This document shows positions 6,591 to 60,705 of a stretch of DNA of 64,000 nucleotides, one piece after another. Under the pieces are notes generated by a model. The model was not told where the DNA came from. It saw only the letters and a list, made by a program, of their open reading frames with translations, and did not search any database. Numbering within the stretch: the stretch's first letter is position 1; every line of letters starts with the position of its first letter. The stretch is from Octopus sinensis. Lineage: Eukaryota. The stretch is from the NCBI RefSeq assembly GCF_006345805.1, contig NC_043006.1, positions 26,040,001 through 26,104,000 on the forward strand, read 5' to 3'. A program made the translations under genes and the position numbers.

Positions 6591-9303
6591 ACAATTTGTC
6601 TGATGCTCTAATAATTCTGCCAATTAGCAGAGACAGAAAGCTATATTTTAAAAACTTAACTTAAAAGATTCAAGAAACACAAAAGTCAAAATAGTTATCA
6701 CTCCATTGCAATGTTTATTATATTTGAAATTTAAAAAATGCATAAATTTCTGACTATGATGCCATTTCATACTTTTAGGACTGGTTAAATATAAAGCCTC
6801 AAAAAATCATTTTAAGTTATGGTTTAAAAAGAAGAAAAAGGTAAGAGAGACAGAGGGGAAGAAAAAGAGATGGATAGATGGATGGACAATGAAAAGAGAG
6901 AGAAAATAGAGTCAAATTAGTCATGAGCAAAGAGCTAAGGTGAAGAAAAGCTGAGTGAAAGGCATTTACACAAATATATGGAAATAGGTAGGCAAAGAAT
7001 AGCCAAGCTTCCAAGGTTATATTGAGACAAAAATAATTATGACAAAAAAAAAATAAATATTCTGTTTTTAAAAGGGTTAAAGAATAGTGACTGAGAACGC
7101 AGTAAACTAATGTCAAAATTAAAAGCAGTTCGTCTCGTTCAAGCTTTGATATCATTTTTAAAACAAAAGTAAATAAAAAGTATTAAGTACACATGCACAC
7201 CAAAAACTGACTAGTCATTATTCTGCACAATAAGTCCTTTTCCCACTCTCAACTACATAATCTGATCAGACAATTATTGCTTCCCCTTGACCAGTATTCT
7301 GACTGATAATTGATAATTGTTCAAGACTATGTTGAAACCTGCTTACAATAATAATGATTGAACACAAAATGGTATTAGGATCATGTCTGACATTAACTAT
7401 CCGAATTAAGAGAGAGAGTGTGTGTGTGTGTACACTCATGCATATGCGGACAATGTATTTGGCATGTTTTATCATCTGTATGAAATTCTATTTTGCTATA
7501 TAGACACAAAATGAAATTCTGTTCGCCTGAAAAGCAAATAGCTGAATGTCTCAAGACTTTAAAAACAAAAAAAGTTCTGATAAGGCTATAGAAAAAAATA
7601 TTAAAAAATAAGACTATACCAAGAAATTTTTACTAAAAGTTCATTTATTGTGGCTGAGTTATTTTTAGTAAGACTGGATAAGTAATGCTAAATGAGCAAT
7701 TAAGTAAACCTTAATATACATAGAATTAAAAAAAATTTTGCAGTCTATGCTTAGTTTATGTACAGCTTCAGGATTTCAATAGAATCACAACACAAACACA
7801 CTTAAACTTTTTCCATAAACAATGGGCTGCAAGTACTCACATGAAGATTTTGGACTGATAACTAGCAATTAGTAAATAAATAAATGTGTATGTTGAGTGA
7901 AAGTATGGTAAAAAAAAAAGTGTATAGAAAGTTTTAAAAGACAAATAGAAATATTGTAAAAGACAGCTAATAGAATTGATGTAATGATAGAATCATCCCT
8001 CCATCACCTCATAGTAATATACAAGATATGCATTCACAGATTTCAGATAGTGTTTTTTTTTTTAAAAGAAGATTTTGTGGAAAACAAGGAATGTAAACAA
8101 AAATTTCGTATAGGATATGGTCCATATGAAAACATCCAACTTCATTTAAATGTTAAACAAGTAAATGCTGCAATGAAAATCTACAAAATGAGGGATTTTT
8201 AAACATTTTTATTAAGGACATTGAGATGAAGGCAGAAATTTCTCAGTCAAATTAATTCTCTTTTATCATACTTTATTTTGTTAAGTTGATTTAATTTGCA
8301 CTTTAATATATCTTGCATATCAAATGGCCAGTCAACTTGTATGATGGCAATTGTTTCACTTATTTTCAAAATTCTTTCTCACATAATTATTTATATTATC
8401 ACTTTGAGCTTCTACAACCACAATTATTAGAAACAAGAAAAAAAAATACATCTTTTTAGATCTTAGAGATGGTTAGCAAACATCACAAAACATCATCAAA
8501 TAGCATAAATTTCAATGTGTTCTTTTATTCTATAATTTACTCAAAAGGAAAACAAATCAAGTATATGATATTTTGCCATCAACTCACTGAATGGACTTGG
8601 AAGAGATGCAAACACTGAGTAGCAATTTCCAATACTCCAGAAGAATTTCAAATGCTAGCAGCAAAATGTATCACTATCATTCAATGTTAAATAGTGTCTC
8701 ATCACAGAACTGGCCAAGTTATTTATTATTTCAACAACAATATATTAAATCAGGTGCTATTGAAAACATTTTTACTTATCAAATGACTAAGGTTGTGGAA
8801 GGAGGGAATTTACTCTTACTGAAGAAGAAATGTTTAACAAATGAATGTCTGGTCTGAAATCAAAAGCTATTGAGGTACAACAAATTTGAAATTGATGAGC
8901 TTCAAAATAACAGAATTTAAGCCACTTTTCCCTCTAAGTTACAGGTAATTAACAGAACTTCTCTCCACAACTGTTATGAGTAAGAGTTCCCCACTCCTCA
9001 CAGCATCTTCAGTGTCAATAATACCATCCTATTACCTGCCCCTAACAGAGATAGTATAATTTCACACAAACACACACTGCTAGAATCGAAATTTCTGCAG
9101 GAACTGATTCTTTTCTCCACTTTTCATTTCTTCATTATTAGTTGCCTGGTTTGAACCTTATAATTATTGGTTACATAGTTATTGCAGCCACTTCATTATT
9201 CATATAAATCAATGGCTTCATCTTCCAACACAACAGGAAGTTTTAAATTTTATTTAAAAAAGAAAGGAATGTCAGATTCAGCAGTGAGTGTGCTTAGTGT
9301 TCC

Positions 9304-9306
<3 letters not shown>

Positions 9307-9343
<37 letters not shown>
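9307..9343. repeat. (GA)n microsatellite in the probable Ral 3'UTR
   Basis: Direct reading of the sequence. Confidence 0.95.
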
Positions 9344-9346
<3 letters not shown>

Positions 9347-9754
9347 TTAAGTCTCTATGTTGCATAAAAAAGTTTGTTTTTTTGCATTTCTGCAAACATA
9401 AGCTGCAAAAGAAAAGCTTTAATCTCCTCCTGAGAAAAATGGAAGAAATTGTATTAAGTATTCAGAGTCTGTCACACTGATACAGTCTGTCACATTGATG
9501 TGTAAGTTTAGCAAATTTATACTGACAGATGCAAAGTGCATGCATCAATGCACACAAGCAAGCAAAGATACATACACGCACACACACTTCCTTGCACATG
9601 CACAAGGGAACAGTTGAGATGAGGAGGTGATAGCCTAGGTTAATGGTAGTTGATGAACCAAAAGAGTGGGTGGACCAACGAGATGGAAGGAAAGGAGGAT
9701 AAGCAAGGAAAAGGACCAGAAATATAGTCAGTGATCAACTGCTCTTGCTCACAG

Positions 9755-9868
9755 TTAAAGAATTATACACTTCTTCTTGCGTCGGTCTCCATTGTGCTTC
9801 TTGCCATTATTTTGTCGACTGGCAGCCATTTTCCGAGAACTGATTTCTCTCATCAAATCATAAAATAC
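9755..9868 (-). CDS. Ral: Ral distal terminal exon (VFYDLMREISSRKMAASRQNNGKKHNGDRRKKKCIIL*), 201-aa isoform
   Basis: Acceptor ttttgcttgtag|GTA in phase 0. VFYDLMREI matches the canonical Ral VFFDLMREI. Ends in polybasic RRKKK plus CaaX CIIL and TAA. Confidence 0.97.
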   Translation of the reverse strand, partial: VFYDLMREISSRKMAASRQNNGKKHNGDRRKKKCIIL

Positions 9869-12127
9869 CTACAAGCAAAAGTGAAGGAGAATTGATTGGG
9901 AAAAGCAACAAAAAAAGGGAGCAAATGAATTCGGGTCAAGTTAAAAAAGGGAGAAAATGAGAAAACAAGGGCTCAAGAGCAACAATCTGAAAATTTGTTA
10001 ATTCTTATATTTTACTATGTTTTTATAGCTATTTTTAACTTTTGCTTTCCATCCAATAGTTGGACATTGCTATTTATAGAATTACAAGAAAAAATTAGTG
10101 GATTATTTACCAACCATAATAGTTGTGAAGTAAAGCTACTTATTTTCAAACAGACTACCCAAGATTTGGCTGATTGAGATATTAGTGGTAGCAGGGTCCA
10201 GCTATAACTATATCCACATAACCAGAATATCAGAAATGATTTTCTTTATTGACATGGCATAAAAGTTTAGTTATTGCCCCACCAAAAATAAGTACACTTG
10301 TGAAAGTGTCTTCAGCAAGTCAAAAATCAAAAAAGAAATTTCAAAGGAAGGATACAAAGTGATTACTACCACCTTCAACAGAACTTTGGGATAACTGGAG
10401 TCAGCACTATAAAGCTAATAAAATAATTGTAGTGTGTCTATTTCTTACAACTTCTAGTATTTATGTACCTCTGAATAAACTGAACATGTATTATGTGTTT
10501 TGGCAAACACATATTGCAATCTGGAATGGGGCTCTGAACCTCCATATACACAGACACTGTATCTTGTCAGTAGTGTAACCCTATTGATTTGTCAGCTGGA
10601 GTTGTACCATCATTAATATTCTGCTGTAATTAAATTGACATCATCAACAACTTCCAACAATATTCAGCAGAGCTCTCTGTGTGACATTTGTGACAGATTT
10701 AAATTAGAGGATTGGCTGGTTTTTATAAAGCCAAAAGTGCTCTCCAATTCCACATTCCAGAATCAAAAGAGAAGGATTATAATTTAACAAGGTTAAGCAA
10801 GATTTCAGTCAAGGTAAGTAATGTACTAAAGAACTCATCTATTATCCAGGCAGAGTAATGCAACAGAGAGAAAGAGAGAGAGTTTCACCATGTTTGCATT
10901 GTGTGCTTTTCTATGCTTGCAGGAGCCAAACAGAAGTTTCTGAATTGGATTTTCTACAACTAGATGCTCTTCTCGCTGCCAATCCGTACTTGTTTCCAAG
11001 CAAGTTAATACTCCCTAAAGGAAGACTAGAAATGAGCAATATCACTAGAAGACACTTACCCAAGTTTCCACACAGTGAGACTGAACCCAAGTCCACATGG
11101 TTGGGAAGCAGGCTTCTTAACTGCATAGCTATGCTTGCTAGAGTCAAGTTCACTGGGAAGGAAAAAATGGTGTTAAATAGTTAACAGCCAATTGAAACCT
11201 GCTTATGGACCTGGTATATACTCTTAGAGCTATGTATTCATTAATTAGACATTTCGTTATAGTCGTACACTCCCAAATCAAAAGTATGGAAGTTTTAACC
11301 AAAAAACCTCATATTTATAGAAATGTAGATATGAGATTGCACAATGCTCATTTCTTTTTCAAAAGTATGAGTATTGAATGAGCTATCAACAATCAAAACT
11401 AAGAAATACAAGCAGCTTGCCAAATTTTGAAGCAATTCTACTCTGAAAGAAGAGAAATTTAATGTTGACATTAAATTAGATCAAAAGTCTACTATATGTG
11501 TAGAGACATTGGCTTAAAATCCAGGAAACTAAAATATTGGACTCTTTTTTTTTTTGGTTGAGAGGTTAAATTGCTAACAATAAATTTTTTAATGGCAAAA
11601 TATACCAATTTTTGAAAAATTCTAAAAATGTGCCAGTTTTCTTTTTGTGTGTGTGAGTGTATGTGTGCATGCACGAGGACATGCATTGGCAGTACATTGA
11701 ACAAAATGTGTAGCCCTGTTTTTCATGGATATACATTTTGAATCTTTTGTTTCTAATGGGGATAAATTTTCATATTTTAGTGGTGGAGGATGTTTTCCTA
11801 TGTAATTTTGTAAAGAAAAGTATCAAAGTCAATTATTTTAACTTAAGTACATTATATACACATTTTTTTTCAGCCCAAAGAATACTGAGTTTTAAGTGAT
11901 TTTTGATAGAATTTTAGCTTGGAAACAAGTTAGGGGAACTAAATACTGAAATGTATTTAGCCCATGCTGTATCTTACATTACAAAATTTAACACTGAAAC
12001 TAATAACAAAAAATGGTTCACCAAAAATAATTCAAATTGTAAGAGTAAGAGCATAAGGGGTGGAAGATAAAAACTGAGATGAATTAAAGCAAAATAAATT
12101 AAGGAAAGAAAAACAAGGAAAAGGGAA

Positions 12128-12133
12128 TTTATT
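12128..12133 (-). terminator. Candidate polyadenylation signal for the proximal Ral terminal exon
   Basis: tttatt on + reads AATAAA on -. It is followed on - by a U/GU-rich tract (ccttttccttgtttttctttcc, about 12125-12100). Confidence 0.55.
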
Positions 12134-12199
12134 AGATATTTTGAACATTTTTTAAGAATTACTTGGAGGACTTAAGAAGGCTAAAGCTAGCTACCAAAA

Positions 12200-12340
12200 T
12201 CACAGAATAGTACATTTCTTTTTATGTTTGGTGCCCTTTCTGTGGCTTGAATTTCCCACAGAAATATTGGCATGTTGGGTCTGAGAAGAGCCAACAGACC
12301 GTTTCCATTTCTGGCTTAATGATAAAAGATTATAAAACAC
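12200..12340 (-). CDS. Ral: Ral alternative proximal terminal exon (VFYNLLSLSQKWKRSVGSSQTQHANISVGNSSHRKGTKHKKKCTIL*), 210-aa isoform
   Basis: Acceptor ttctttttctttttccag|GTG in phase 0. 47 open codons ending in polybasic KHKKK plus CaaX CTIL and TGA. Starts with VFY like the distal exon. AATAAA lies 67 nt after the stop. Confidence 0.85.
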   Translation of the reverse strand: MFYNLLSLSQKWKRSVGSSQTQHANISVGNSSHRKGTKHKKKCTIL

Positions 12341-12519
12341 CTGGAAAAAGAAAAAGAATAATTCACGTAATAGTGCATTAATGATTTGGCTAAAAAGACA
12401 ATGTTAAAACAATGGTAATGGTTTACTACATAAATTATGCAACAGCCTCAAACTTATATTCCCATAATTATACATTAGGACTTAAAAGACATTATAATTT
12501 TCAAAGAAACAAATAACAC

Positions 12520-12557
<38 letters not shown>

Positions 12558-14059
12558 CTTTGTCTAGTGGTTATGGAAAAAGAGGTTTTGTAGTGGATGA
12601 GTCTGAAAGGATTGAGTCAAGACACCTCCCTCTTCAGCCAAGCCTTCATTGACTTTTTAAGTTCCATTTGAAAAGGAAAGTGAGGGTGGAGAGAGAAATG
12701 CTCTCTCTCTGTTAATTTGGGAAAAAAAACAGCAAAAATTTGTTACAAAAATGGTTAGGGTGTATGGACCTACTCTAAGCATGCACTTATAGTTTAGAGA
12801 ACAACAGTTGAGTTAGGGCTCATGCTTTTGGTTGTCAAGGTAATGATGGATCTGGTTGGCCCTTGAATGATGCAATCCTCCTGTATCAGGAGGATTGCAT
12901 CATTCATGTATTCACATGCTTATATATGGCGCATGCTTTTATCTTATTTCACTGTCTTTTCCCACCACAAAAAGTATATTCTTGTAATGTTCCCTTCATC
13001 TATGCCTTGTGACAAATAAAAGAAATCATTATTATTATTGCAGCAGATCAGTTAAGTGATAGATACAATAATCAATTAGATTAAGTATCTTGTGGTGCTT
13101 ATATCCTGTTTATATTTTCTATATAAATCCTTCCAAAATAGAATTTGCCTTTCATCTGTCAGGAGTTGATAAAATATGATATACTAGACAGGGATTGATG
13201 TTAAACAACTATAGCTTTACCCCAATAATTCCATGATTATATCCTTCCCAATAAACACATGACATTGTGCCTACCTGAGAAGTCATTATCATTAATAGTA
13301 ATAAAAATGCTACTATTATTATAAGGATCACATTTTACAGAACATACATTGAAGGATGTTTTCAGTATCAATAAAGATGTGTTACATAATTATACTAGAG
13401 AATATTTAGGTTGAGGATTATTGATAATTTCAAAATATGTTAGGTTCAACACTGCTGCAAGACATAAACTAATCTTCCTTGAGTGGTAGCCTTTACATCA
13501 GATTATATCCCACCTCTCGATTTTAAATCAAATTAATCAGTAAAACATTGAAATAGGGTATGAAACTTACCTCAGTATATGTTTTATATGGAACTGTAGC
13601 AAATTTACATAAATTTCTTAATTTGTATACATGGGTATACTTCATTACTAGTTTAAAATAATTCTATTTTTCAGACTTTATAGGTTTTGCGCCAAATTAT
13701 AATGAAAGTAATAATGGTTCATAATATTAGGATAACACTACAATTGAACAAACTTTGGGGGTGATTTGATTTAATCAATTCAGTATTTTATTGGTAATTA
13801 TTCTATTAACCTTGAAACAATGCAAGGCAAAAATTGACCCCAGTGAGATTTGAACACAGAACATTCTTTGATTCAAATCATCTGAGTAAAACACAAATAG
13901 TAATGACATTTTATAAGCCCTGTGAACAATGGGTCCTATAGCTTCGCACTCCTGCAGTATAACAGAAAAAAATTTCCTTACTAGGTAAAGTGAGCACTGC
14001 TTGAAATAAAAAAAAATTAACTCAAATACTCTCAAAATAGAGAGCAGACAAAGAAGCCA

Positions 14060-14700: not shown

Positions 14701-15149
14701 TAAAACTTATGGAAGCCTGATGTTAATTGATGATGAGATGCAAAAAGACACATATACACACAATCATAATCATCATTTAATGTCTACCTTTCATACTGGC
14801 ATGGGTTAGACAATTTTGCAAGATCCTACATGCAAGAGGACTGTGTCAAGCTTAAATGTCTGCCAAGGCATGATTTCTATGTTTGATGCTCTTCCTAATG
14901 TCAGCCATGTTACAGAGTGTACTGAATGCTTTTCCATGGCACCAGCACAAATGAGGTAGCCATGTAACTCACAAGACAAAATAGAGCTCTCAACTGAGTG
15001 GGGTAGTAGAAAGGGAGGAAGATGTATGCCACATATGACAGATGGACAAACAAGGTCATGATGTAGCAGAGATACATGGCTACCCCATACTATATAAGGG
15101 TGAATGGGAGAAGCAGGAAAGAGAGTTAAAGATGGTAGAGATAAATGTC

Positions 15150-16440: not shown

Positions 16441-16788
16441 CCTACAGTGGTAAAATCTGATAAGACAATTTAGATACAACTAAACAGAAGGGCAACTGTA
16501 AGGAAAGCAGAGTAAGACTCTACAGAACTTATAAGAAAGTGTACATTAATCATGAAATAATTCTGGTTTGATAACTTTGATCATACAAGCAGAGCTAATC
16601 CCCCTGTGGACACCCTATATGTTGCTATGGATCACCAATATAAAAACTTGAGTAGAAATTAATAATTGTGGTTTTAGTGATAGACTACAAACTTGAACAA
16701 TTAGTAGCTTGAAGGGAATCCATCTGTAAAAGCAATATATCCAACAATATTCAAACACAAAGGTCAATAATTAATCAACAATTCATAC

Positions 16789-16963
16789 CTTATCAACATT
16801 AGCTCTAGTTTTAGCTGAAGTTTCTACATAAGACACATTCCACTGGACAGCCCTCTGACTAGCTTCATCTGCACTGACTTGACGTTTGTCCTCAAGATCA
16901 GCTTTGTTGCCAACTAGTAGGAATGGAATATTGTCATCATTTTTAACTCTTAGAATTTGTTCC
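16789..16963 (-). CDS. Ral: Ral GTPase, coding exon 3 ([59 protein letters not shown])
   Basis: 175 nt with cag|G acceptor and AAG|gtatga donor. Phase matches exon 2. Contains G4 NKAD and G5 ETSAK. Confidence 0.98.
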
Positions 16964-21226: not shown

Positions 21227-21484
<258 letters not shown>

Positions 21485-29772: not shown

Positions 29773-29880
29773 CTCATCGTACATAAATTGTAGGGTGAGG
29801 GCAGATTTGCCAACACCACCACTACCAACCATAATGACTTTGTGGATCACAGCAGGTTGTTGTGCCTTGGCCTTCGACAT
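29773..29880 (-). CDS. Ral: Ral GTPase, first coding exon ([36 protein letters not shown])
   Basis: Manual translation gives the G1/P-loop GSGGVGKS in the Ral-typical HKVIMVG...LQFMYDE context. Donor GAG|gtaagt at 29772. Upstream acceptor tttccag at 29912-29913 leaves 31 nt of 5'UTR in this exon. Confidence 0.98.
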
Positions 29881-30594
29881 GTTTTTGCAGAGTTGTGCAC
29901 CTTGCCAGCAACTGGAAATGAAACAACATATGTTAATGAGCAATATATCAATTAATAGCCATCAAAAAGATATGAAGCTCAAAGAAACATTGATTTCAAT
30001 CACAAGATCTCTTTCAAACAACAGAAAATAACCAGCTGCATCATGACTGCTTATAAGCTACTTCAAAAATTTACAACCCACTCCAAATAAAATGCAGAAA
30101 CATCTGTAGAAACAATATAGCTGGTTAGTACAGTAAAGAATAGATATCAACAACAAATATCTGATTTTCAATGATATAATTAAAGAGACTAACAGACAAA
30201 ACCAAACAGGAACAGGCTAGCTGACCAAGAAAGAGATGCAGACAAGCTGAAGCAAACAGTAATATGTTGATCAAATTTTCTTCTTAATTAACAATTATTT
30301 CAGTTAACAATTAAACGATGTAAACAGTGTGTATACCATTCATAAACAAGCACATCGTATTTACAATGGTTGAACATATGCTCATGAAGGTGTGCACTTG
30401 CACCCCCTAAAATTTTCAGGGAGCAATAAAAATGCTTTCAACATCCTCTTGAAAACTTCACCGCCAACATGAATGAGCATAGAAACGTTTTTGGACTGAT
30501 TTGAAACATTACTTGGATTTAGCCAGTTTGATTGGTGTACAAAAGTAATAATAATGATTAGTATTATAATTAATAAGGCAATGAGCTGGCAGAA

Positions 30595-42231: not shown

Positions 42232-43388
42232 TACGAGGGCTGTTCAATAAGTAATGCCCCTGACCCACTTCCCATAGCAGTAGAGCAACGAAACTTGGCA
42301 CAGTTATTAGTCTTTTTCTACATAGGAACCACCCAGAGTTACGCATTTCTCCCATCGTTTGATGCAGCTCTGGAGACCGTTTTTATAGAAGACCCCAACT
42401 TGATCCTCCAACCACAACATGACTTCAGAAATCAAGACTGCATCATCTGGGAAACGCTTTCCTTCATGGCTGGGATGAGGTGAAAATCAGAGGGTGCAAG
42501 GTCAGGAGAGTAGGGGGGATGGGGGAGCAGTTCATAGCCGCACACCTGGGCTTCTGATCTGGCGACACGCGAGTTGTGGACCGGAGCGTTGTCCAGCAGG
42601 AGGAGGATGCCTTTGCTGATCTTGCCCCGCCTCTTGATTTTGATAGCTTCTCTTAATTTCCTCAAAAGTGAAGCATAATAGGCTCCTGTAATTGTGGTAC
42701 CCTTTGCCAGGAAATCTGTCATCACTACTCCGTCCTGGTCCCAGAAAACTGTGAGCATGACCTTGCCAGCGGAGGGCTGCACCCTTGCCTTCTTTGGAGG
42801 AGGTGAGTCACGGTGCTTCCACTGCACTGACTGGGCTTTGGTCTTTGGATCATAGTGATGGACCCAGGTTTCATCCTGTGTAATCAGTCTTTTGAAAAAT
42901 TTTGACTCATCTTCTTGGCACATCTCCAAATTCATCATCGAGCACTCGACGCATTCTTGCTTCTGGAAAGGTGTGAGCAACCTGGGAATCCATCTGGTAG
43001 ACACCTTTTGCATATGCAAATGGTCATGACAGAGGGGGAGCGACCAGATCTGGAAGCTGTTTCCACAGAGTTCCGACCATGTTTGAATTCACGATGCCAG
43101 CATTTTACAAGGTCATATGATGGGGCATCATCACCATAAATTACTTTCATTTCATCAAAAGTCTCCCATGGTATGCGTCCTTTCAAATACAAACACCCGG
43201 ATCACTGCTTGACACTCAACAGGCTCCATTTCACACTTGACTCCGTTCAAACGCCTGTAAATCAGAAACCACAATTAGTTCAAAGCTGTAATTTGTCACT
43301 TAATCTATAGAGATATAAATAATTGCACATGCAAAATTTCAGCTAGATCAAACAACTGCAAGTGGGTCAGGGGCATTACTTATTGAAC
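42232..43388 (-). mobile_element. Mariner transposon with internally deleted and frameshifted transposase
   Basis: WIPRLL, ITQDETWVHHYDP, LLLDNAPVH and PYSPDLAPSDFHL motifs. Exact inverted TIR core GTTCAATAAGTAATGCCCCTGACCCACT at 42242-42269 and about 43361-43388. The right TIR lacks its outer ~10 bp. Confidence 0.95.
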
Positions 43389-60174: not shown

Positions 60175-60705
60175 ATCATCATCATCGTTTAGCGTCCGCT
60201 TTCCATGCTAGCATGGGTTGGACGGTTCAACTGGGGTCTGGGAAGCCAGAAGGCTGCACCAGGCCCAGTCTGATTTGGCAATGTTTCTACAGCTGGATGC
60301 CCTTCCTAATGCCAACCACTCCAAGAGTGTAGTGGGTGCTTTTTACATGCCACCGGCACAGGTGCCAGATGAGGCTAGCAAACGGCCACGATTGGATGGT
60401 GCTTTTTACATGCCACCGGCACGGAGGTCAGTCGGGGCGGCGCTGGCAACGGCCACGTTTGGATGGTTCTGTTATGTGCCACCAGCACTGGTATCACAGC
60501 TACAATTTCCATTGATGTTGATCGATTTCGATTTTGATTTTTTTTATTTGATTTTCACTTGCCTCAACAGGTCTTCACAAGTAGAGTTTTGTGTCCCAAG
60601 AAGGAAAGGTATGCATAAGTGGACTGGCTACATACCAGGTAGAGGCCACGGGTTATGGTCTCACTTGTCCTGCCGGGTCTTCTCACGCACAGCGTACTTC
60701 CAAAG

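Follow-up and report, generated by a model that had tools for sequence, protein, structure and literature searches.

Two alternative tail exons predicted at the Ral locus of octopods

Ral controls the exocyst and vesicle delivery, and the separate roles of RalA and RalB in vertebrates are largely set by their C-terminal tails. Can an animal draw comparable diversity from one Ral gene, by a choice between last exons? The question is raised by a 64,000-nucleotide stretch of the Octopus sinensis genome (positions 26,040,001 to 26,104,000 of contig NC_043006.1, assembly GCF_006345805.1). We refer to this whole stretch as the window, and coordinates are those of the window unless another sequence is named. 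The window matches O. sinensis chromosome CM016868.1 with 100% identity over 8.1 kb and carries, on its minus strand, a Ral gene with three shared coding exons followed by two tail exons. A first-pass annotation, made from the sequence alone, had proposed that the two tail exons arose by tandem duplication and supply RalA/RalB-like diversification from one locus. Our analysis makes it quite probable that octopus Ral has one shared G-domain, encoded by exons 1 to 3, and two mutually alternative 3ʹ-terminal coding exons.

A shared G-domain and two tail exons

The core exons were located by tblastn against the window with a human RalA query, and the three exons match that query with 94%, 83% and 77% identity. 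The coding part of exon 1 (MSKAKAQQ...FMYDE; 29773–29880, minus strand), defined by tblastn and by the N-terminally extended RefSeq models P0018 and P0024, ends at a GTAAGT donor. Exon 2 (FVEDYEPT...AEFR; 21228–21436, minus strand), defined by tblastn and translation, is 209 nt long and ends in phase 2. Exon 3 (..EQILRVK...TRANVDK; 16789–16963, minus strand) ends in phase 0 at GAT AAG/gtatga, which reads ...ANVDK, and its GTATGA donor is common to both tail exons.

The G-domain motifs, including NKxD and ETSAK, can be read in the translation, which is ~85% identical to human RalA over the G-domain. A search of PDB sequences scored RalA highest (318 bits), followed by RalB (290 bits) and H-Ras and K-Ras (~187–190 bits), and both isoforms score 114 bits against the TIGR00231 small_GTP model, for which the cut-off is 42.5. 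By these scores the octopus protein is unambiguously a Ral. The switch regions are nearly identical to those of human RalA, and from this near-identity only we predict binding of the effectors Sec5, Exo84 and RalBP1 and activation by RalGEFs. The first-pass annotation proposed a single Ral gene. Consistent with this, no second octopus Ral locus was present among the best 120 relatives, which is a non-exhaustive set.

The proximal tail exon (coding sequence 12200–12340, minus strand) encodes 46 amino acids, VFYNLLSLSQKWKRSVGSSQTQHANISVGNSSHRKGTKHKKKCTIL, and then a stop codon. These comprise the end of helix alpha5, a Ser/Thr-rich linker and KHKKK-CTIL. The distal, canonical tail exon (coding sequence 9755–9868, minus strand) encodes 37 amino acids, VFYDLMREISSRKMAASRQNNGKKHNGDRRKKKCIIL, with VFYDLMREISSRKMAASRQNNGKKHNGDRRKKK-CIIL, and then a stop codon. 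Each is preceded by a pyrimidine tract and an AG, and both are in the same phase after the exon 3 donor. The proximal acceptor occupies 12341–12365 on the minus strand (tgaattattctttttctttttccag), with the junction ttctttttctttttccAG/GTG; the distal junction is cacttttgcttgtAG/GTA. An AATAAA poly(A) signal lies 67 nt past the proximal stop (12128–12133, minus strand) and is conserved in Octopus bimaculoides. The segment between the two tails (9869–12199, minus strand) would belong to the 3ʹ untranslated region (UTR) of the proximal form and would be intron in the distal form; its divergence from O. bimaculoides is 5.8%, the neutral rate. The first part of the distal 3ʹ UTR (9000–9754, minus strand) is more conserved than the intron. 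The proximal tail contains a unique tryptic peptide, SVGSSQTQHANISVGNSSHR. Both tail peptides, the two separate acceptors after ...ANVDK and the AATAAA had been reported in the first-pass annotation, and our independent reading of the minus strand reproduced them exactly.

How closely are the two octopus tails related? The synonymous differences that had been listed between them are all present (GTG/GTA; AAA AAG AAA against AAG AAG AAG; CTG/CTT). By hand count, 12/18 nt agree at the start of the exons and 18/24 nt at the end, and only these ends align. A tblastn comparison of the two tails gives a weak match (E 0.026–1.2). The proposed common origin of the two octopus tails is a plausible reading, with the alignment confined to the exon ends; clear homology between tail exons is found in an oyster, as described below.

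A six-frame scan of the window found 71 strings in which a CaaX box (Cys-aliphatic-aliphatic-X) is followed by a stop codon. Only 2 of the 71 combine a stop-free stretch of 30 or more codons upstream with four or more Lys or Arg residues among the eight before the Cys, and they are exactly the two tail exons. The possibility of a chance open reading frame is ruled out by this window-wide control together with the conservation described below. A scan of the interval from exon 3 to the distal exon for the motif xF[YF]xL...Cxxx-stop found no third tail exon and returned only the known two, each after an AG. A structure prediction with AlphaFold2 from a 44-sequence alignment had a mean confidence score (pLDDT) of 47, which is too poor for use, and no structural conclusion was drawn from it.

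Selection on the proximal exon and its use

Comparison with O. bimaculoides (locus L011) shows one mismatch in the 141 nt of the proximal coding sequence against 150 in 2587 nt of flanking intron (5.8%), an eight-fold deficit of substitutions (binomial P = 0.0021). The proximal exons of the two species have no synonymous differences, where only ~2 were expected, and the acceptor is identical over its last 23 nt. The first 100 nt past the proximal stop diverge by 6%, with the AATAAA intact. The distal coding sequence has no mismatches. Divergence of the distal 3ʹ UTR (9000–9754) is 2.7%, compared with 5.8% for the intron, which suggests that it has regulatory content. In Octopus vulgaris (locus L013) the protein encoded by the proximal exon is 100% identical, and the distal tail protein is 100% identical in O. 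bimaculoides, O. vulgaris and Argonauta.

Argonauta hians provides a more distant comparison. Between exon 3 and the distal exon, its Ral locus (L001) contains a counterpart of the proximal exon at 60553–60690, which encodes AFYSLLSMSQKWKQRVGSSHVQHANASASGSNHKKGSKQKKCVIL and a stop codon. The two tails have 63% amino acid identity (tblastn E 6e-15), and their lengths differ by exactly one codon. The Argonauta exon follows an acceptor (...tcttccag/G), its stop codon comes directly after CVIL, and an AATAAA lies ~50 nt downstream. By the Nei-Gojobori method, the proportions of non-synonymous and synonymous differences between Octopus and Argonauta are 0.217 (pN) and 0.411 (pS), and the ratio of the corresponding rates (dN/dS) is 0.43 (one-sided Fisher P = 0.03). 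For the distal exon, synonymous divergence is ~1.3 and dN is 0. A blastn comparison of Octopus with Argonauta aligned no intron sequence; the proximal exon also went undetected and is visible at the protein level only. Within the proximal linker, the segments QKWK, VGSS, QHAN and KG[ST]K are kept between the two genera. Based on the comparisons with O. bimaculoides, O. vulgaris and Argonauta, we conclude that the proximal exon is coding and that purifying selection, if relaxed, acts on it across Octopoda. Selection on the protein had been suggested for both tails, and the octopod comparisons bear this out. Stops, frameshifts or loss of the AG or the CaaX box in orthologues had been named as marks of a dead exon; instead, the exon is conserved in all three species, with acceptor, frame and CaaL-stop intact in Argonauta.

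Is the proximal tail already annotated? An exact-sequence look-up identified the proximal-tail protein as RefSeq XP_036362298.1, “ras-related protein Ral-A isoform X3 [Octopus sinensis]”. The N-terminally extended O. sinensis isoform X1 (P0024) has the same tail, and O. bimaculoides isoform X1 (XP_014789607.1) has it with one residue changed (R to Q). The distal-tail protein corresponds to XP_052826522.1, XP_014789608.1 and CAI9728260.1. Thus, both octopus isoforms are already in automated annotation. A tail-only protein search returned no candidate; the database was searched by cluster representatives, and the octopus isoform was clustered under a canonical-tail Mya protein.

Several observations weigh against the two-tail reading, or at least against strong expression of the proximal isoform. 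The O. vulgaris annotation, which was built from Iso-Seq and RNA-seq data through PASA (O. vulgaris genome paper), lists three Ral products, none of them with the proximal tail. The newer O. bimaculoides RefSeq protein with the distal tail (XP_052826522.1) has no isoform label, and the newest release lacks the proximal isoform. Exact look-ups of the full proximal protein and of nine truncated or extended variants found no transcript-derived copy, a result that is uninformative since the canonical control was equally absent. Finally, non-synonymous change has been far faster in the proximal tail (dN 0.26) than in the distal one (dN 0). Because neither the O. vulgaris annotation nor the newest O. 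bimaculoides RefSeq release lists it, the proximal isoform may be rare, minor or tissue-restricted. Transcript evidence comes from a presumed bivalve with a Mya-like tail: in six spliced mRNA contigs, each from a different sequencing run, an alternative tail is followed by ~1 kb of its own 3ʹ UTR, and none includes the canonical exon. In this presumed bivalve at least, the alternative tail exon is therefore expressed and terminal.

Could the proximal exon be an internal cassette that is spliced on to the distal exon, as is KRAS exon 4A (PMC9882654)? The protein would be the same, the distal exon would become 3ʹ UTR, and the mRNA might be a target of nonsense-mediated decay. GT dinucleotides are indeed present downstream of the proximal stop, but the nearest of them (TTG/GTAGCT) has a changed base at position -1 in O. 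bimaculoides and has no Argonauta counterpart, and no GT donor past the stop is conserved across Octopus, O. bimaculoides and Argonauta. A poly(A) hexamer lies 50–70 nt past the proximal stop in O. sinensis, O. bimaculoides and Argonauta, and the alternative-tail mRNAs of the presumed bivalve end in their own 3ʹ UTR. Since there is no conserved donor and the AATAAA is conserved, the proximal exon is better read as a true alternative last exon of the CDC42 type than as a cassette like KRAS4A, and we consider the cassette improbable. We consider it very improbable that the exon is dead, that is, a decaying duplicate outside productive mRNA that RefSeq over-predicts. Its absence from the two annotations described above and its fast evolution relative to the canonical tail would fit this explanation, but a dead exon should not have eight times fewer substitutions than its flanking introns, nor keep its frame, acceptor, CaaL and stop position in Argonauta despite saturated introns, with a dN/dS of 0.43. 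In addition, models of the isoform were made independently for two species. Conservation could also reflect a non-coding function, such as a regulator of splicing or polyadenylation or an enhancer, with an open frame that is incidental. The lack of synonymous differences within Octopus is the kind of pattern expected from this, although no more than ~2 were to be expected in any case. In contrast, synonymous sites changed about twice as often as non-synonymous sites between Octopus and Argonauta, the sole indel is one whole codon, the stop comes right after CaaL in both species, and conservation ceases at the stop codon. A purely non-coding role therefore seems to us exceedingly improbable.

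Other features of the Ral locus lie around these exons. The intron after exon 3 opens with GTA TGA (16783–16788, minus strand), such that reading through exon 3 gives ..ANVDKV and a stop. This matches exactly a 165-amino-acid O. vulgaris model that has no CaaX box (CAI9728261.1; P0008), the source of which is probably an unspliced or intron-terminated transcript. At the other end of the gene, exon 1 starts at an acceptor near 29911, and an in-frame reading from an upstream 5ʹ exon is possible. RefSeq O. sinensis isoforms X1 and X2 begin in a 5ʹ exon ~75 kb upstream (near position 1001 of locus L012, outside the window) and are in frame through the 31 nt that precede the canonical ATG (29881–29911, minus strand). 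N-terminally extended Ral models from Argonauta, Sepia, Aplysia, Mizuhopecten, Pinctada (MFSCW) and the nemerteans Lineus and Tubulanus have a Cys followed by W, F or P ~7–11 residues before the canonical Met; in Lamellibrachia and three Logan proteins, the motif is 20–24 residues upstream. It could be an N-terminal lipidation motif, or merely conserved splice-site or 5ʹ UTR sequence. A study of Caenorhabditis elegans described the N-terminal extension of its own Ral as nematode-specific (PMC12407918).

Repeats are also found in the locus. The large 5ʹ intron of Ral contains a transposon remnant, recognised by a mariner/Tc1-type transposase motif, HPPYSPDLAPSDFHL, in a 195-amino-acid open reading frame (42432–43019, minus strand). 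Between the tail exons is an interspersed repeat of ~74 nt (11046–11119) that resembles a short interspersed nuclear element; the O. bimaculoides Ral locus has copies of ~80% identity in other places (L011 1528–1600 and 8208–8281). Two microsatellites are present: (TAT)12 at 12520–12556, which is upstream of the proximal acceptor by ~180 nt, and (GA)19 at 9307–9344, within the distal 3ʹ UTR. A megablast search with the inter-exon segment against a phage collection found no match. One database record deserves comment: a Fukomys damarensis “O-RAL” entry (P0025; 357 amino acids) scores 415 bits against the octopus isoform, above every non-octopus Ral, and is probably a fused or tandem gene model.

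Tail exons in other Lophotrochozoa

Is a second Ral tail specific to octopuses or cephalopods? It is not: the same arrangement occurs in bivalves and gastropods, and matching isoforms are annotated in a nemertean. Isoforms X1 and X2 of Mya arenaria, and X1 and X2 of Haliotis cracherodii, have a shared core and different tails. Crassostrea virginica and Saccostrea echinata each have three Ral tails (X1, X2 and X3). Alternative tails are also found in Pomacea, Physella, Babylonia, Bradybaena and Mytilus, and a lone alternative-tail protein comes from Lymnaea. Outside Mollusca, isoforms X2 and X3 of the nemertean Tubulanus (P0062 and P0043) combine the same core with two tails. Two very similar proteins with an annelid-like long tail, P0046 and P0065 (P0032 is grouped with them), also carry the two tail types; they differ at one core residue and so may not come from one gene. 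These tail pairs hint that Ral tail switching is older than the molluscs.

We compared the octopus tails with bivalve and gastropod Ral loci, as the first-pass annotation had suggested, and found the octopus layout in each of the three that we mapped (Mya, L008; C. virginica, L009; Haliotis, L010). Exon 3 is followed by one or more alternative exons, every one of which has an AG acceptor of its own, and then by the canonical exon, which is the most distal in all three. C. virginica has three consecutive tail exons, at 13531–13692, 14984–15082 and 16074–16184 of L009, which end in CCQLL, CCVLM and the canonical KCTIL. The middle exon (X3) is a clear copy of the canonical exon (43% identity, E 2e-6), and homology is clear for this pair (X3/X2); in octopus, only the exon ends align. 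With the same arrangement in bivalves, gastropods and, by its isoforms, a nemertean, the duplication is probably far older than the first-pass annotation assumed.

The canonical tail, polybasic and ending in CxIL, is almost invariant across Lophotrochozoa. Alternative tails are longer (45–54 amino acids against 37–38). Most of those from outside the cephalopods start with xFYDLL, often contain K-[WYF]-K, and end in C-CaaX or CxCaaX with M, A, Q or L in the last position; their ends include CCILM, CCILA and CCQLL. The alternative tails of Haliotis (KKKKCVLM) and Mya (GGWCVLL) lack the second Cys. A profile search with 17 alternative tails and a short anchor recovered mostly short canonical-tail fragments and a few further bivalve alternative tails (P0142, P0209, P0216, P0217 and P0261), and nothing from cephalopods.

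Is the octopod proximal exon a descendant of the same exon, or a separate invention? Two observations weigh against common descent. The octopod proximal tails (KKKCTIL; QKKCVIL in Argonauta) have no second Cys beside the CaaX Cys, and hidden Markov model profiles of the two tail types score the octopod tail about equally (13.5–16 bits for the alternative profile and 11.3–15.1 bits for the canonical one). The alternative is that the canonical last exon was duplicated in tandem on the cephalopod or octopod lineage, independently of the bivalve and gastropod tails and with the same outcome for the protein. That the octopod tail ends in polybasic-C[TV]IL, as does the canonical tail, and without the CC or CxC of most molluscan alternatives, is what such a duplication would give, as is the lack of preference in the profile scores; the younger canonical copy in oyster (X3) demonstrates that repeated duplication at the Ral locus does occur. 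On the other hand, the octopod proximal tail shares position, length class, LL and KWK with other alternative tails. The position is the same in four molluscan lineages, the 45–54 amino acid length class is common to the alternative tails, and LL with K-[WYF]-K is common to octopods and gastropods (LLRTMNKFKQ in Haliotis, LLSLSQKWKR in octopus). The Haliotis alternative tail, too, is polybasic and has only one Cys, and parsimony favours a single origin. We regard the independent duplication as rather unlikely. It is, with reasonable though not strong confidence, by position and parsimony and not by sequence, that we treat the octopod proximal exon as orthologous to the other molluscan alternative tail exons. 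On this view, the likeliest history is that octopods, bivalves and gastropods have versions of one old alternative tail exon, the proximal exon being that of octopods.

A broader proposal follows the same lines, and we consider its chances about even. Tail switching may be ancestral to lophotrochozoan Ral, at least in molluscs and possibly also in nemerteans and annelids, with two to three anchor variants kept over hundreds of millions of years: a polybasic geranylgeranyl type and a Cys-Cys farnesyl/palmitoyl type. Octopods would have remodelled the second tail into a polybasic, geranylgeranylated one with a conserved KG[ST]K site open to phosphorylation. Ral would then be a third independent case of tail switching, beside KRAS4A/4B and CDC42.

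Tail chemistry, related systems and meaning

What would the two octopod tails do? We propose that the exon 3 donor (16789) chooses between two acceptors. Splicing to the distal acceptor (9868) would yield the canonical Ral of 201 amino acids, with the longer, more conserved 3ʹ UTR. Splicing to the proximal acceptor (12340), with cleavage and polyadenylation after the AATAAA at 12133–12128, would yield a Ral of 210 amino acids. The longer protein would have the same switch and effector surfaces, a different end of alpha5, a longer Ser/Thr-rich linker and its own polybasic CaaL box (CTIL). The C-termini are Cys-aliphatic-aliphatic-Leu followed by a stop in both genera (CTIL and CIIL in Octopus, CVIL and CIIL in Argonauta). 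A CaaX box in which X is Leu directs geranylgeranylation by geranylgeranyltransferase I (GGTase-I). Because both tails end in Leu, both are predicted GGTase-I substrates, and from this rule only, both should be geranylgeranylated and associate with membranes. The lysine run would hold them on acidic membranes.

Both octopod tails are polybasic with CaaL, and we found no difference in lipid-anchor class between them. The isoforms should therefore differ in linker-dependent properties and in the 3ʹ UTR rather than in lipid type. The suggestion of RalA/RalB-like diversification from one locus, and the analogy with KRAS4A/4B, are accordingly upheld for the architecture only, the two tails being of the same lipid class. 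The linker may act in either of two ways. Conservation of QKWK, VGSS and QHAN suggests a binding surface, through which the linker might bind a partner. Alternatively, the linker could act through an electrostatic switch: its basic patch includes a Ser or Thr that the distal tail lacks (Octopus RKGTKHKKK, Argonauta KKGSKQKK), a candidate site for switching by phosphorylation. Switches of this kind are known at S181 of K-Ras4B, S194 of RalA and S198 of RalB. For the C-CaaX and CxCaaX tails of other lophotrochozoans with M, A or Q in the last position, the sequence predicts a farnesyl and possibly a palmitoyl anchor with little basic charge. Over all four final residues (M, A, Q or L), the prenylated Cys beside the second Cys would carry a farnesyl or a geranylgeranyl group.

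One close known system in exon layout is KRAS4A/4B. As in octopus, two last coding exons lie in tandem after a phase-0 intron and supply the end of alpha5, a hypervariable region and a CaaX box apiece; in KRAS the two exons are homologous, the proximal one is minor and faster-evolving, and the distal one is polybasic (PMC9882654). The two systems differ in that KRAS 4A is a cassette exon whose product is palmitoylated and farnesylated, and 4B is polybasic and farnesylated, whereas in octopods CaaL follows a polybasic stretch in both tails, and the proximal exon, having an AATAAA of its own, looks like a terminal one. The 4A exon arose in jawed vertebrates, and its origin is thus unrelated to that of the octopod exon. 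CDC42 has true alternative last exons with separate 3ʹ UTRs, which change the lipidation motif at the C-terminus of a GTPase that is unaltered in the rest and give a ubiquitous CVLL form and a brain CCIF form (bioRxiv 10.1101/366369; PMC13236570). The CC-type Ral tails of bivalves and gastropods resemble the CCaX tail of brain Cdc42, and also palmitoylated Ras and RhoB. CDC42 is, however, from a different GTPase family, and the second Cys is missing from the octopod alternative tail, either by loss or from the outset.

Functionally, the split between RalA and RalB is the nearest analogy. RalA and RalB have almost the same G-domain, and their functional divergence lies mostly in the hypervariable region at the C-terminus, where the octopus isoforms also differ. 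Unlike the octopus isoforms, they are products of separate genes, and both have tails of canonical type (CCIL or CCLL); the octopus diversity would come from exon choice at one locus. A recent paper states that invertebrates have “a single Ral protein” (PMC12407918). The ral-1 gene of C. elegans, like that of octopus, is a single invertebrate Ral gene with annotated isoforms (exons 1a and 1b), but the variation is N-terminal and reported to be dispensable, with no change of the C-terminal tail (PMC12407918). The lophotrochozoan RefSeq isoform sets are another close parallel: each species has the same core with alternative tails, and in the mapped loci exon 3 and the canonical exon flank the alternative exon or exons. 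The octopod tail is unlike most of these alternatives, being polybasic with a final Leu as opposed to C-CaaX or CxCaaX with M, A or Q. Our literature search turned up neither an account of alternative Ral tails in an invertebrate nor a paper that cites the RefSeq accessions. The remark in the first-pass annotation that such tails were not known to be described in cephalopods thus agrees with the literature that we found, although the isoforms are already in RefSeq. The mechanism is familiar, being of the KRAS4A/4B and CDC42 kind, and the octopus case is one instance of a broader and apparently undiscussed pattern.

What follows for the biology of Ral? With the isoforms in RefSeq and a familiar mechanism, the practical value of the observation is limited. 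If it is true across molluscs, tail-dependent Ral sorting evolved at least twice, by gene duplication and by exon duplication. Studies of Ral in the neurons of molluscs, such as knock-downs, antibody work and single-cell expression, would then have to tell the isoforms apart. The octopod pair would also be a natural experiment on what the linker contributes beyond lipid type: the two proteins share their G-domain, the anchors are alike in being polybasic and predicted to be geranylgeranylated, and the linkers alone differ.

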